IMG/VR virus record: IMGVR_UViG_3300042540_001399
Location: 186,001 to 250,000 of that record
DNA: 64,000 nucleotides
Strand: one strand, 5' to 3'
Notes under the pieces: generated by a model
What the model was told of the DNA's origin: nothing
Database searches by the model: none
Seen by the model: only the letters and a program-made list of their open reading frames with translations
Shown here: positions 35,915-54,410 of the stretch, piece by piece
Numbering within the stretch: position 1 is the stretch's first letter
Layout: every line of letters starts with the position of its first letter
Position numbers and translations under genes: made by a program

Positions 35915-35986
35915 GCTCTGTAAGCATTGTTGGAGATGCGCCTGACTTGTAATCAGGAGAAATCAGTTCGATTCTGGTACGGAGCT
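35915..35986 (+). tRNA. tRNA-Thr(TGT)
   Basis: GCTCTGT/ACGGAGC; CCTGA-CTTGTAA-TCAGG; TTCGA. Confidence 0.9.
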
Positions 35987-38075: not shown

Positions 38076-38531
38076 ATGAACCGTGTATTTAGAACGGTGG
38101 AAGGGGTTTCTATACCTGATATTGTAAAACATACTATTGATATTCTTAAAGAATGTCCATATGCTGAAATACACATTGGTACAGACTCACAAAACCATAG
38201 AAGATCAACCGTGTATGTTACGGCAATAGCATATAGATATGGTAACCGTGGGGTTCACTACATTTATCATAAACAAAAAATTAAAAAAATTCGTGATAAG
38301 TGGACAAGATTATGGAATGAAGCTGATTATTCGATCGAAGTTGCAAATTGGTTGACAAATAAAATAAAGGTTCAAGTTGAAATAGACCTTGATTACAATT
38401 ATCAAGAAAAGTACTTCAGTTCGAAGTTAGTTGGTCCAGCGGTTGGGTGGGTACAATCGTTAGGTTATAAGGCAAATATAAAACCAAATAATCAAATTGC
38501 AACAAGAGCGGCAGACCACCACTGTCGTTAA
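38076..38531 (+). CDS. RNase H-like YkuK family protein
   Basis: IGTDSQ, RLWNEA, DLDYN, IKP...AADH. Confidence 0.8.
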   Translation: MNRVFRTVEGVSIPDIVKHTIDILKECPYAEIHIGTDSQNHRRSTVYVTAIAYRYGNRGVHYIYHKQKIKKIRDKWTRLWNEADYSIEVANWLTNKIKVQVEIDLDYNYQEKYFSSKLVGPAVGWVQSLGYKANIKPNNQIATRAADHHCR

Positions 38532-38533
38532 TT

Positions 38534-38605
38534 GGTCGGGTGTCTGATGGGTAAAGTCTCGGTCTGCAAAACCGTAGTATGTGGGTTCGAATCCCACCCC
38601 GACCT
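38534..38605 (+). tRNA. tRNA-Cys(GCA)
   Basis: GGTCGGG/CCCGACC, U73; loop CTGCAAA. Confidence 0.9.
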
Positions 38606-38614
38606 CAACAAAAT

Positions 38615-38688
38615 GCCCCTATGGCGGAATTGGTATACGCGTGTGACTTAGGATCACAATCTTGCAGGTTCGAGTCCTGCTGGGGGTA
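38615..38688 (+). tRNA. tRNA-Leu(TAG), short variable loop
   Basis: GCCCCTA/TGGGGGT; TGTGA-CTTAGGA-TCACA; variable region ATCTT. Confidence 0.9.
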
Positions 38689-38727
38689 CAAATATTTTTA
38701 TTAGTATATTTATACTAAAAGATTATT

Positions 38728-39620: not shown

Positions 39621-39716
39621 AAAACACATAAACTTTGGTTCCCACACAGCGGTGAGACGGGGTAAGTTATATACAATTTCTCGGGGCTGGAAGTAGAAAG
39701 CCAAAGAATGTGTTTT
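39621..39716 (+). ncRNA. candidate rod-like structured RNA C (6S-like?)
   Basis: AAAACACAT/ATGTGTTTT, CTTTGGTT/AGCCAAAG, CAGC/GCTG, GAGA/TCTC nested stems. Confidence 0.55.
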
Positions 39717-39777
39717 TTTAAAAAAAACTTTACAAAGTATTTGGTAGAACAAAATAAAAAATTTAATTTTGTAATAA

Positions 39778-40103: not shown

Positions 40104-40228
40104 AGGCAAGTGGCGGAATTTATGGCAGACGCTTAGGTTGATTCCCCGTAAGAAGTCACCGAGATATAGCTGGGGATGTCTCTTGAAAAGGGAACTATAT
40201 CGTACAGGTTCGAATCCTGTTTTGCCTA
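40104..40228 (+). ncRNA. tRNA-like RNA with expanded anticodon/variable region and pseudoknot
   Basis: AGGCAAG/TTTGCCT acceptor, Leu-type D arm, ACAGG-TTCGAAT-CCTGT T arm, ~70-nt insert. Confidence 0.75.
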
Positions 40229-40382: not shown

Positions 40383-40463
40383 GCTGACGTACCAGTGGAT
40401 GCTTATATCATCTATACCTGTAGCGGTAAGTTGAAAACGTTGGTTCGAATCCAACCGTCAGTA
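40383..40463 (+). tRNA. D-armless tRNA-like RNA with TAT anticodon-like loop
   Basis: GCTGACG/CGTCAGT; GGATG-CTTATAT-CATCT; GTTGG-TTCGAAT-CCAAC; 7-nt D replacement. Confidence 0.6.
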
Positions 40464-40466
40464 CGG

Positions 40467-40610
40467 GAGTGTATGCAGTAGAGATCTGCTTATGATGGTA
40501 GGGACAAACACTTTAAAAAAGGGTCCCAAAGAGATAAGCCGTTTAGTAGTTTTGGTCGATAAAAACTAACGGATTTTATAGTAATGGTTCACCGATCGAA
40601 ACCAATACTC
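40467..40610 (+). ncRNA. candidate multibranched RNA F
   Basis: GAGTGT/ATACTC closing stem with four internal hairpins. Confidence 0.5.
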
Positions 40611-40681
40611 ATGATGTCAGAAAGGTTGATCACCTAATTCATGTAAACACCGTGACAACACCCCAAAGTTGTCACACTTTT

Positions 40682-40761: not shown

Positions 40762-40834
40762 GGGCCTGATGCCGACGGCAGGTCGAGTGGTTTGCAACCA
40801 CATCGTTTGGGTTCGATTCCCACAGTGTCCACCA
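40762..40834 (+). tRNA. atypical tRNA-Ala(TGC)
   Basis: G3:U70, A73, encoded CCA; GTGG-TTTGCAA-CCAC; bulged acceptor stem. Confidence 0.75.
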
Positions 40835-41092: not shown

Positions 41093-41164
41093 GGTCGGTT
41101 CATCTAGGGGTCAGGATACAAGGTTTTCATCCTTGTCACACGGGTTCGAATCCCGTACCGACTA
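41093..41164 (+). tRNA. tRNA-Glu(TTC)
   Basis: GGTCGGT/ACCGACT; CAAGG-TTTTCAT-CCTTG. Confidence 0.93.
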
Positions 41165-41189
41165 CAAACCTGTCAAGGTAGTACAGGAA

Positions 41190-41305
41190 GGTCAGGAGTG
41201 TAATGAGGCACGGTGCCAAGTCCTAAAGACACCACGGTCCAAGAGCAATTTGGACGCGAGAAGTTATAAGGTTGCTCATTGTAGGTTCGAATCCTACCCT
41301 GACTT
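41190..41305 (+). ncRNA. tRNA-like RNA: acceptor plus T arm with novel 84-nt body
   Basis: GGTCAGG/CCTGACT; GTAGG-TTCGAAT-CCTAC; AATGAG/CTCATT and GTCCAA/TTGGAC stems. Confidence 0.7.
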
Positions 41306-41307
41306 CA

Positions 41308-41455
41308 CGGTTCGGATCATCACCGAATAGTATGCCCAATACGATGAGAAATGAGGTGATACCTCATATGGGACTTCTGATAGATAAAGGATCTATTCGG
41401 TTTGACTAACCGCGGGAAATATCAAAGAGGGTTGAAGAACTACGTACCCTCGAGT
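41308..41455 (+). ncRNA. candidate multi-hairpin RNA H
   Basis: CCGAATAG/CTATTCGG, ATGAGG/CCTCAT, CGGTT/AACCG, GAGGG/CCCTC. Confidence 0.4.
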
Positions 41456-41461
41456 CCAATT

Positions 41462-41536
41462 GGTCCATTGGTGTAGTGGCTAACATTCATCCCTGTCACG
41501 GATGAGCCGCGAGTTCGATTCTCGCATGGACCGCCA
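41462..41536 (+). tRNA. tRNA-Asp(GTC)
   Basis: GGTCCAT/ATGGACC-G-CCA; CATCC-CTGTCAC-GGATG. Confidence 0.95.
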
Positions 41537-43726: not shown

Positions 43727-43791
43727 AATATATTTTTTTTTATAAATATAAAGTTTTTCAAAAAGTAAATAGTTTGATAATATTTATTAAT

Positions 43792-45549
43792 ATGTCAAAA
43801 TTGTCTAAAGTATCTTTTTTTATTTCGATAGTGATTATGTCAATTTATTTTGTGACACAATCTTTACTTGTGACAGGAAACATAAGTTATAGTAAAAATA
43901 TCGGTTATGCTGGATATATATGTTTTTTACTTTTTGTATCTTTTTTTGGGATTTACATTTATGAATATTTGAAAAAAAACAAAAAAATAAAAAAAAGAAG
44001 TGATTACGTTAAAAAATTAAATGAAACATTAATATATCAATCATTAAATTCTTCTTTTTTCGAAGGTAACACGTCAGAAGGCGCTAAAGTTCTAACTAAA
44101 GAAGTCAGTAATTCAATCAATGCTGACAGATGCTCAGTTTGGTTGTACAATACAGACAGAACTTCAATTATTTGTCAACAATTGTATTCCAAAAAAACTG
44201 ACAGCTGGGAACAAAATTATGAATTATTAAAAGAAGATTATAAACCTTATTTTTTATCTCTTTTATTAAATCCTATCATAGTTGCAAATGATGCAAGAAA
44301 TCATAGTGCAACATCATGTTTTAAAGACACTTATCTTGACCCATTGGGTATTAAATCTATGCTTGATGTTCCCATTTCCTACAAGGGAGACACTATTGGG
44401 GTAATATGTATTGAAAATTTTGATTTTAGAATTTGGGACCAAGTTGAAATTGATTTTGCTCAAATGTTATCAGCATTATATTCATTTGCATATTCAATAA
44501 AAGAAAATAATAATGTTAATAAGACAATTGATGATATTGAAGGATTTATAGATCATTCGGTATTAGTAAGTAAAACGGATTCTAAGGGTAAGATAGTTTA
44601 TGTGAATAAAAAGTTTGAAGATGTTTCTGGTTGGAAACTTAGTCAGGTAATAGGAAAAGATCATAACATTGTTAATTCAGGAAAACATACCAAAAATTTT
44701 TGGAAAGACATGTATAAAACAACAGTAGAAAAAAGAAAGATTTGGAACCAAATAGTTACAAATAAAACAAAAAAAGGTGAACTTTATTGGGTTGATTCTT
44801 ATATAATGGCAGAATTTGACGAACAAGATTGTTTAAAAGGGTTTATGTCTATAAGGTATGATGTTACAGATTTGATAAAAAAAACTGAAGAAATAGCGAA
44901 GAAAAATGTTTATTTGGAACATGCCGCAAAAATATTAAGACATGATATGCATTCAGGAATTAATACTTACATACCAAGAGGGATAAGTTCGTTAGAAAGA
45001 AGATTGAGTGATAACCAAATTCAAGAATATAAATTGGAAGCCCCTTTGAAAATGTTGAAAGAAGGTCTCAAACACGCTCAGAAAGTTTATAAAGGTGTTT
45101 ATGAATTTACTAATTTAGTAAAAAAAGATTCAGTGCTCAACAAAACTAAAGTAAACTTAAAAGAAATATTAGAAAGTTACCTATCAACAACATCATATAA
45201 ATCACAAGTTGTAATTGATACTTTAGAAGACCATGAAGTTAATGAACCTTTATTTTGTACCGCCATCGATAATTTAATTAGAAATGGCCTCAAATATAAT
45301 GACAATGATAACAAATTTGTACATTTATATATGGAAGATTTTCAGTTGGTAATTCAGGATAATGGAAGGGGGCTGTCACAAGAAGAATTTGACAATTTAT
45401 CGAAACCATACGTAAGAAAAGAAAACCAAAAAGAAAGTGGTAGTGGTTTAGGTTTAAATATATGTTTAGCAATACTCAAAGAACACGGATTCAGCGTTTC
45501 TTGTGAAAAAAACCATATAGGCACTAAAATTAAAATTAAATTCAAATGA
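43792..45549 (+). CDS. sensor histidine kinase (2 TM, GAF, PAS/PAC, HisKA, HATPase)
   Basis: H box RHDMH, N box NLIRNGLKYN, G1 QDNGRG, G2 GSGLGL; PAC KTKKGELYWV. Confidence 0.92.
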   Translation: MSKLSKVSFFISIVIMSIYFVTQSLLVTGNISYSKNIGYAGYICFLLFVSFFGIYIYEYLKKNKKIKKRSDYVKKLNETLIYQSLNSSFFEGNTSEGAKVLTKEVSNSINADRCSVWLYNTDRTSIICQQLYSKKTDSWEQNYELLKEDYKPYFLSLLLNPIIVANDARNHSATSCFKDTYLDPLGIKSMLDVPISYKGDTIGVICIENFDFRIWDQVEIDFAQMLSALYSFAYSIKENNNVNKTIDDIEGFIDHSVLVSKTDSKGKIVYVNKKFEDVSGWKLSQVIGKDHNIVNSGKHTKNFWKDMYKTTVEKRKIWNQIVTNKTKKGELYWVDSYIMAEFDEQDCLKGFMSIRYDVTDLIKKTEEIAKKNVYLEHAAKILRHDMHSGINTYIPRGISSLERRLSDNQIQEYKLEAPLKMLKEGLKHAQKVYKGVYEFTNLVKKDSVLNKTKVNLKEILESYLSTTSYKSQVVIDTLEDHEVNEPLFCTAIDNLIRNGLKYNDNDNKFVHLYMEDFQLVIQDNGRGLSQEEFDNLSKPYVRKENQKESGSGLGLNICLAILKEHGFSVSCEKNHIGTKIKIKFK

Positions 45550-53479: not shown

Positions 53480-54376
53480 ATAGATTATCCGTTCAGGAAA
53501 AGTTTTGTCAGATTCTATGACAAGTAATTGGAATGAAATTTCCATCTTTGAATGATAAAGATATTGGGCCGTGTATAGTCCATAAAATAAACTACGAAAG
53601 TAGGATAAAGTGAACCCTTAAGTGTGTTGGGTTTGCGGCTTCTTCGGGAGCTTGAGTACACAAGCGGGATACCATTTTGGCTTTAGTATTGAGGGCAACG
53701 CTGTAAAGAATAAGGCAAAATGATTTGGCGATGTGGGTCGTCTGATTGAGGTGGGAACACCAATAGGAATAACCCGTAGGAATATTGCAAGACTCAAAGT
53801 CATCCAACTTTAATATTGCGTTTTCCAATATAATAGGTTACTTAAAACCAAGTGGAAGGACCACAAGGTAAGATGTAGAACGAGTGGTGTCGCTAACATC
53901 CTTCACTCAGGTTTACCAAAACCCGGTGATGAAGTAGTCTAAAAATATGGAGGTAGGGATATCTCACGGAGTAGTTGAGTATCGACTCGTTCAAAAGATG
54001 GGTTGGCTCGGTTGGCGGACCACTACTTCGACAATCCACGACACAAAACTTATGACTATTGAATTAAGTCCATTAATTAATACATTAAGGAAAAGTGTCC
54101 GTCAGGTTTGGATGAAAGGTGACTACATAGTAATGAGCCGTTCATTGCACACAGAGATCCCAAGTCGATGTGTAATTATCCGAAAAACCTTTAGTCCCGC
54201 AAGGACGAGTTGGGAAGGCATTCTCGAAAAGAGTAGATTAGGATGAGAGTAATTCAAACCTTAAGGAGTGGTAAACCTAAAAGACCGTCACTGAGAAATA
54301 CTTCTCAAAAGGAAGTGGATAAGAGTAGAAACAATAATGACTCTAAAGGTTCTCACACAAACGTGTAATCTCAGCG
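53480..54376 (+). ncRNA. large ornate ncRNA, GOLLD-like
   Basis: ~0.9 kb, visibly GC-richer than flanks, many GNRA/UUCG-type hairpins, CTGAGA/TCTCAG terminal stem, own promoter and terminator. Confidence 0.7.
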
Positions 54377-54410
54377 TTTTATTTTAATGGAGCCACCGGT
54401 AAAGAACATT

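Follow-up and report, generated by a model that had tools for sequence, protein, structure and literature searches.

Transfer RNA arrays of phages are usually viewed as codon-supply devices. The closest functional precedent for the element described here is species 1 RNA (rnaC) of phage T4, which lies on the tRNA strand of the phage tRNA cluster and is annotated as a small stable RNA. It is 139 nt long, with a 5' extension outside its tRNA-like part; in its 3' part, a perfect T arm (CCGGG-UUCGAAU-CCCGG) directly adjoins an acceptor-like stem of 8 bp, and there is a GG-containing hairpin but no normal anticodon arm. In other domains of life, mascRNA and the TMER modules of gammaherpesvirus 68 are tRNA-shaped, non-decoding RNAs that are cut by RNase P/Z and bear CCA; they are cloverleafs with an anticodon-arm remnant and are unrelated in sequence to our element. 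YrlA (RF02553) is a noncoding RNA that contains an internal tRNA-like module with a T arm, and its ends form the Ro-binding stem. The tRNA-like domain (TLD) of tmRNA combines an acceptor stem and a T arm without an anticodon arm, with a helix joining the strands beside the T arm, and mycobacteriophage DS6A encodes a TLD-only ssrA, i.e., a relative of tmRNA that consists of this domain only (PMC4131195).

The window analyzed here is a 64-kb stretch (bases 186001 to 250000) of a 290,887-bp IMG/VR jumbo phage record rated 99% complete. ARAGORN called 22 tRNAs, all on the plus strand between window positions 35915 and 42107 and none elsewhere in the genome, which represent 18 amino acids and leave out Ser and Ala. 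One of them, tRNA-Leu(tag) (38615-38689, +), is only 75 nt long and lacks the long variable arm, which is unusual for a bacterial-type tRNA-Leu. The element is embedded in this array (Table 1). No convincing ORF overlapped it, and no promoter-like or terminator-like site private to it was found. In Pfam and PHROGs searches, the neighboring ORFs showed no partner related to tRNA; an RNase H-like DUF and proteins without assigned function were all that was identified. An RNase H-like (PF04308) gene inside the array (38076-38531, +), which is 58 to 100% identical in 61 related viral loci, is possibly an array-associated nuclease. Farther along, a 591-aa ORF (43774-45549, +) with GAF, PAS, and histidine-kinase ATPase domains resembles a sensor kinase, which is unusual for a phage, and a full-length GOLLD RNA (53967-54377, +; Rfam, 320 bits) and a phage tmRNA (55939-56329, −; Rfam, 114 bits) lie together 12 to 15 kb downstream of the array. 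Genes for SmpB and for a CCA-adding enzyme were not found in the phage; a search for a Ro/TROVE gene gave no match in the 99%-complete record, whereas control genomes did match.

The whole 64 kb was searched for perfect T arms whose 3' neighbor is a strand able to pair with a 7-mer located 25 to 170 nt upstream. Combinations of a T arm with a 7-bp acceptor stem fell almost only within the tRNA array, and three of them had been missed by ARAGORN (40104-40227, 40383-40462, and 41190-41305). Since such pairs are almost confined to the array, the acceptor stem and T arm of the element are real and not a chance occurrence. A preceding sequence-only reading, which had proposed a GGTCAGG/CCTGACT acceptor and a GTAGG-TTCGAAT-CCTAC T arm, was borne out in this respect, including the direct contact between the T arm and the acceptor 3' strand. 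Canonical tRNAs (RF00005) share this arrangement, in which a 7-bp acceptor stem adjoins a T stem of 5 bp capped by a 7-nt UUCRANY loop; the element differs from them by lacking an anticodon arm and by a rewired core (a clamp helix, Pa, and a short-looped D arm). Across the family, acceptor positions 2 to 7 were nearly invariant, position 1 was U, A, or G, and pair 1-72 was U-A, A-U, G.U, or a G/A mismatch, while T stem pair 3 covaried from G-C to A-U. In one diverged relative (L003), the flanks could not be aligned with those of the window, and the element was conserved from the first through the last acceptor base. This conservation inside unrelated flanks indicated that the boundaries of the element are fixed. 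Among the phage's own tRNAs, tRNA-Cys (38534-38606) in particular resembled it: the acceptor is one pair off (GGUCGGG versus GGUCAGG), the T arm is identical to that of most family members, U73 and the 3' trailer type are shared, and this gene was the best nonfamily match of the covariance model R1 (34.4 bits).

Table 1. Architecture of the tRNA-like element, in window coordinates
Feature	Position	Strand	Remarks
tRNA-like element	41190-41305	+	Between tRNA-Glu (41093-41165) and tRNA-Asp (41462-41536), within the 22-tRNA array
Acceptor stem, 5' strand GGUCAGG	41190-41196	+	Pairs with 41298-41304; 7 bp; pair 1 is G.U
Clamp helix Pa, 5' strand AGUG	41197-41200	+	Pairs with 41273-41276
Joining segment UAAUGA	41201-41206	+	Conserved; U-A-A invariant
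P2 hairpin GGCA/UGCC, loop CGG	41207-41217	+	4 bp; GG (41212-41213) invariant; D-arm homologue
Joining segment AAGU	41218-41221	+	GARU across the family
P3 variable arm	41222-41271	+	Closed by invariant CC (41222-41223) and GG (41270-41271); occupies the anticodon-arm place
46-nt type A insert	41224-41269	+	Inside P3; helix GAC/GUU (41228-41230 with 41263-41265) and hairpin GUCCAA-GAGCAAU-UUGGAC (41237-41255)
Clamp helix Pa, 3' strand UGCU	41273-41276	+	Within near-invariant UUGCUCAUU (41272-41280)
T arm GUAGG-UUCGAAU-CCUAC	41281-41297	+	Canonical; directly abuts the acceptor 3' strand
Acceptor stem, 3' strand CCUGACU	41298-41304	+	Pairs with GGUCAGG (41190-41196)
Discriminator U, then C	41305-41306	+	In the family always A/U, then C; CCA not encoded

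Relatives were gathered by pattern scans of IMG/VR and by a protein-anchored fetch of related arrays, which yielded 33 distinct versions on about 55 IMG/VR viral contigs, from samples that look freshwater derived. Two near-complete relatives of the phage (G001 and G002; 272 and 304 kb) do not have the element, which is therefore accessory and dispensable in this clade. Outside these viruses, the conserved 19-mer had four matches in a set of one genome per prokaryote species, about as many as expected by chance according to our own estimate, and none of them fits the R1 model. A curated phage collection contained no relative of the element and gave only tRNA-Gly and tRNA-Asp matches to the region; no description of the family was found in the literature. 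In Rfam 15, no family reached its threshold on the element, and no YrlA or tmRNA match was obtained on 41190-41305 at E values up to 10. Like rnaC, which is likewise absent from Rfam, the element sits on the tRNA strand of a phage tRNA cluster; however, the two share no sequence similarity, their bodies are unrelated, no T-even match was found in the phage collection, and rnaC shows no sign of a clamp helix or a modular variable arm. Because precedents exist in T4 species 1 RNA and in the tmRNA-like domain of DS6A, this is a new family, not a new principle. Of the earlier proposal of a "new tRNA-mimic ncRNA class," the conserved tRNA-like RNA gene outside Rfam thus stood, and the words "new class" were overstated.

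Alternatives for the core fold were tested on a MAFFT alignment of the 33 sequences. The 4-bp clamp helix Pa was paired in 99% of the alignment cells, with U.G to C-G changes. It was also seen in more distant sister copies found with R1, where pair 1 is A-U, U-A, or G-C, pair 2 is G-C, G.U, or A-U, and pair 3 is U.G, C-G, or U-A; the alignment of these copies was fitted to R1 and so is biased towards its structure, while the letters themselves are directly readable. In the P2 hairpin, three of four pairs change on both sides (G-C to A-U seven times and C-G to U-A three times), and RNAalifold predicted P2 independently. A canonical D arm directly follows positions 8 and 9 and presents G18-G19 in a loop of 7 to 11 nt. 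P2 begins 10 nt past the acceptor stem and has a loop of only 3 to 4 nt, whereas the sister copies carry a normal 8-nt D loop, AAAUGGUA, at the same site. Because of this 8-nt loop in the distant copies, we regard P2 as the homologue of the D arm, P3 as standing where an anticodon arm would be, and Pa as a clamp acquired in addition, which shuts off P2 and P3 from the acceptor/T-arm stack. Covariation was found in the acceptor, Pa, P2, P3b, and T helices, with 16 pairs changed on both sides. Overall, 94% of the cells in the model helices were paired, compared to 27 to 47% when the partners were slid, and none of 500 shuffles reached the observed value. The unpaired parts of the core (AGYGUAA, UUGCUCAUU, and the GG loop) were the best conserved of all.

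This model departs from the sequence-only reading mainly in the body. There, an "unrelated 84-nt body" had been described, with neither a D nor an anticodon arm. The absence of an anticodon arm was correct, but the covarying GG hairpin at 41207-41217 qualifies the absence of a D arm, and the body is made up of a highly conserved core of ∼38 nt, including this D-arm homologue, and a lineage-specific insert of 46 nt. Comparison of the homologues retained the acceptor stem, the T stem, and the GUCCAA/UUGGAC helix, while two of the three proposed body helices failed. The long-range stem AATGAG/CTCATT was paired in 88% of cells, but all of its changes were on the 5' side and uncompensated, and two of its pairs were broken in 8 to 9 of the 33 sequences. 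The GTC/GAC hairpin was broken in relatives and clashes with the covarying pairs CC/GG (41222-41223/41270-41271) and GAC/GTT. In contrast, relatives carrying this insert have retained the GTCCAA/TTGGAC hairpin (41237-41255), in which a C-G pair has become U.G. Other candidate folds were also rejected. A D stem of the Rfam type (GUGU/GCAC) was paired in 84% of cells, with one pair unpaired in 13 of 33 sequences, and it clashes with the covarying P2. The minimum free energy (MFE) fold of the window sequence (−34.8 kcal/mol) differs from the covariation model (−24 to −28 kcal/mol), which weighs against the model for the window's own copy; the 9-bp helix of the MFE fold, GAGCAAUUU with AAGGUUGCUC, was rejected as a family feature, because relatives cannot form it. 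Finally, the conserved CUCAU in UUGCUCAUU is not a Met anticodon loop that has moved, since no stem closes it and it changes together with the clamp helix in the sister copies.

Family members had four sizes before the discriminator (74, 77, 82 to 83, and 115 nt), and the entire difference lay between the invariant CC and GG of P3. Depending on the member, this arm consists of a loop of 5 or 8 nt, of a 6-bp hairpin whose loop is of the GUURA type, or of a branched insert of 46 nt. Two unrelated structured inserts of this same length occur in the family, of which the window has type A; its helix GAC/GUU covaries to AGU/ACU in relatives. In 1.4 Mb of related DNA, the inserts were found only inside the family and its sister paralogues, and no copy elsewhere in this DNA pointed to a mobile element. 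An intron was likewise rejected, as insert-free forms still have no anticodon arm.

These size variants bear directly on whether the element decodes. The Rfam tRNA model (RF00005) was the best in-clan match on 41190-41305, reaching 21.5 bits against a threshold of 29 (E = 0.078), and it aligned end to end only by deleting the anticodon arm against a 60-nt unaligned stretch. The same arm was deleted in the 74- and 82-nt relatives (22.1 and 21.2 bits), so that the 115-, 82-, and 74-nt forms tested all stayed below the threshold. With default settings, ARAGORN made no call on the element; when introns were permitted or thresholds lowered, it proposed Phe(aaa) containing an intron of 23 nt and Cys(gca) starting internally, which were forced and inconsistent and were discarded. 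A working decoding tRNA, in which P3 would be a long or intron-bearing anticodon arm, would suit a phage without tRNA-Ser and tRNA-Ala, and the inner hairpin of the window copy does have a 7-nt loop with GCA at the anticodon position in the relaxed ARAGORN call. However, P3 can be as short as a 5-nt loop or as long as a 46-nt insert, its loop sequence is not conserved, and in no size class does a 7-nt loop contain both U33 and a conserved triplet. Hairpins of 17 nt in P3 have 5-nt loops (GUUAA, GUUGA, and GUUAU) with G at the place of the absent U33, and the loops of the long inserts differ from one another (GAGCAAU, UAACCAU, GAACAAU, and GACACUUG). The short forms have no candidate anticodon loop, so that the insert does not represent an intron. 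The element could be thought of as the tRNA-Ser that this phage is missing; we rejected this, because it coexists with tRNA-Ser and with complete tRNA sets. In L014 to L018, it lies beside canonical tRNAs for all 20 amino acids, including tRNA-Ser and tRNA-Ala, and other copies lie beside tRNA-Ser. Given this coexistence and its absence from the two near-complete relatives, the element is neither a replacement tRNA nor essential. A decoding function, already contradicted by the family comparison, is thus hardly credible.

Nor do the data fit a decaying, functionless tRNA pseudogene. Derivation from a tRNA, loss of the anticodon arm, and the two relatives without the element would all be compatible with decay. 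However, the core was >90% conserved across about 55 contigs with fully diverged flanks, compensatory changes occurred in five helices, the unpaired motifs were invariant, and RNA was present (see below). Covariation and conservation already contradict decay, which we therefore regard as extremely improbable. Taken together, these results make it very probable that the element is a real, structured, tRNA-derived RNA gene that does not decode.

An RNA without an anticodon might still carry an amino acid. An aminoacylated donor or acceptor working outside the ribosome and recognized by its acceptor stem alone would agree with the near-invariance of acceptor positions 2 to 7, with the resemblance of the acceptor and T arm to the phage's tRNA-Cys and U73 in the window copy, and with the constant acceptor, A73, and tRNA-Leu-type D arm of the wider paralogues. 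On the other hand, copies that are nearly identical can differ in having A or U as the discriminator, and the 1-72 pair varies; this drift argues against a strict aminoacylation identity and leaves such a donor highly improbable.

We also looked for the element in public RNA data. In the fetched loci, all 79 occurrences were co-oriented with the flanking tRNAs. The acceptor stem was followed by [A/T]C in each of 34 distinct contexts, and the tRNAs of the window have trailers of the same kind, mostly ACAA or TCAA. Element 31-mers turned up in numerous public RNA libraries of freshwater, river, and estuarine origin, and short-form relatives were also present in RNA libraries. Assembled contigs from six libraries of six studies (X16, X17, X19, X32, X33, and X35) covered part or all of the element, and contigs of at least 95% identity covered 41191-41303 in several independent studies. 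In run X19 (90% likeness), the depth was ∼255 on the element and 9 to 12 beside it; in run X35 (95% likeness), it was 48 on the element. As these data are assembled contigs that run into the flanks and may include precursor RNA or contaminating DNA, they show presence only. In the same run X35, contigs of 39 to 52 nt piled up just downstream of the element (41319-41384, +) to a depth of up to 90, with adapter letters directly before 41317 and 41319, as would be expected if a small RNA fragment had a defined end at this place. Since the contigs do not report the ends of the element, the steps of RNase P, the 3' enzyme, and CCA addition are deduced from shape, context, and trailer. On these grounds, tRNA-like maturation of the element appears likely.

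A conserved motif of ∼90 nt (…CAGCGGUGAGA…GGAGUAGAA…GAAGAGUCGUUGUU; 39630-39720, +; no Rfam match at threshold) is found in the same arrays. In the window it follows tRNA-Leu(taa), and in many relatives (e.g., L036, 13923-13966) it reaches precisely to the 5' boundary of the element. The main rival explanation takes up this arrangement: the element would be a processing mark that acts in cis only, recruiting RNase P and RNase Z to cut the array precursor and thereby setting the ends of the RNAs next to it, and the excised piece would have no function. The exact abutment of motif and element in many relatives, their occurrence in the same RNA contigs at the same depth, the several other tRNA-like pieces in the array, and the dispensability of the element are all consistent with this. 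RNase P and RNase Z minimally need an acceptor/T-arm minihelix. Nevertheless, the unpaired core is the best-conserved part of the element and the internal helices covary, which such a mark would not require, and in the window the motif does not adjoin the element and lies 1.5 kb away. We therefore consider a mere cis mark unlikely, although it is the strongest competitor of a non-decoding stable RNA.

Resemblance to the tmRNA and Y RNA systems raises the possibility that the element imitates them, titrating or redirecting SmpB, Ro, or a similar reader of tRNA shape. As in the tRNA-like domain of tmRNA and in the DS6A RNA, an acceptor stem and a T arm stand without an anticodon arm, and a helix next to the T arm ties the 5' strand to the 3' strand. 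Furthermore, the phage has a tmRNA of its own. A phage RNA made up of the TLD alone has been described, and comparable molecules act as inhibitors of tmRNA (PMC4131195). However, the element differs from these RNAs by U3-A70 (a U-A pair in 32 of the 33 sequences) in place of the G3.U70 of alanylation, by the lack of an encoded CCA and of any Rfam tmRNA score, and by its stemmed D-arm homologue. The G3.U70 pair is the identity element for alanine. With YrlA it shares a tRNA-like module with a T arm in a noncoding RNA, but the element itself ends in the acceptor stem, unlike Y RNAs, in which the tRNA-like part is internal. RF02553 gave no match in the window and only a partial one on a relative (L107; 12.9 bits versus a threshold of 69). 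Moreover, the phage has neither a Ro nor an SmpB gene, and an SmpB decoy would compete with the phage's own tmRNA. A mimic of the TLD or Y RNA type is accordingly quite improbable.

The arrays contain further tRNA-like pieces. A noncanonical tRNA-Ala(UGC)-like gene (40762-40834, +) with G3.U70 and an encoded CCA was called by ARAGORN only at a relaxed threshold; it has a weak tmRNA match (12.8 bits), is 89 to 100% conserved in about 25 related loci, and is probably either the "missing" tRNA-Ala of the phage or a TLD-like RNA. The two other combinations missed by ARAGORN both have a perfect acceptor stem and T arm with an odd body: one is 124 nt long with a tRNA-Leu-type D arm (40104-40227, +), and the other is 80 nt long and 80 to 98% identical in 34 related loci (40383-40462, +). 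An intergenic segment of ∼218 nt (40464-40681, +) can be aligned with 30 related loci at 67 to 75% identity and possibly represents a further structured RNA. In related arrays (e.g., L058, 14575-17640; L014, 7470-7823; and L070, 1662-2552), many paralogues share one frame, consisting of the acceptor AGUCAGG/CCUGACU, A73, and the T arm ACAGG/CCUGU, around hypervariable bodies. A D arm of the tRNA-Leu type is often present, and some bodies contain an internal second T-arm-like hairpin. ARAGORN assigned them inconsistently (Val, Pro, Leu, Asn, or Arg) or as "???," with anticodon loops of 6 or 8 nt (ttaa, ta, tt, ac, or ctta).

Family and paralogues might together form a phage toolkit of anticodon-less tRNA mimics, built on a constant AGUCAGG...CCUGACU-A frame with hypervariable bodies. 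In such a toolkit, the constant frame would provide for processing, CCA addition, stability, and recognition, and the clamp-closed core with its exchangeable arm would act in trans, for example by absorbing host tRNA-directed defense enzymes or translation factors. We put this forward as a rather doubtful extension of the main explanation.

The best explanation as a whole, which we favor on balance, is a non-decoding, tRNA-derived stable RNA with probably tRNA-like maturation. Two parts of a tRNA are kept, the coaxial half made of acceptor and T arm and a D-arm-like hairpin; by docking on the T loop, the invariant GG of this hairpin could form a tRNA elbow. An arm free in length and sequence replaces the anticodon arm, and a new 4-bp clamp connects the strand directly following the acceptor with the one directly preceding the T arm. 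The element would be cotranscribed with the neighboring tRNAs in a single precursor, from which RNase P would release the 5' end at 41190 and the 3' tRNA-processing enzymes the end near 41305, and a host enzyme would add CCA. A stable RNA of ∼119 nt, unable to read codons, would then accumulate. The element thus probably mimics a tRNA without decoding. Its activity could be that of a trans-acting mimic, i.e., a decoy or sponge for a protein that reads the acceptor stem, T arm, or elbow, which is the most speculative step of the proposal. Alternatively, the tRNA shape might be a scaffold that stabilizes the conserved core and the variable arm and ensures correct processing. Any one specific role in trans, be it decoy, sponge, or scaffold, is at best a tentative suggestion.

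The element is a new RNA family, suitable as a candidate for an Rfam entry, and at the same time adds a new structural variant to a type of phage RNA that is known but little understood. Finders of tRNA genes miss such elements, and relaxed settings mislabel them as Phe, Cys, Val, Pro, and others. In its design, the element is a natural counterpart of the engineered tRNA scaffold with which structured RNAs are expressed. Its natural size variants, clear structural model, and presence in environmental RNA offer a tractable entry to the 50-year-old puzzle of T4 species 1 RNA. The arrays of a widespread group of freshwater jumbo phages carry, besides their tRNAs, conserved tRNA-shaped RNAs that are unable to decode, and related arrays appear to hold many such RNAs.
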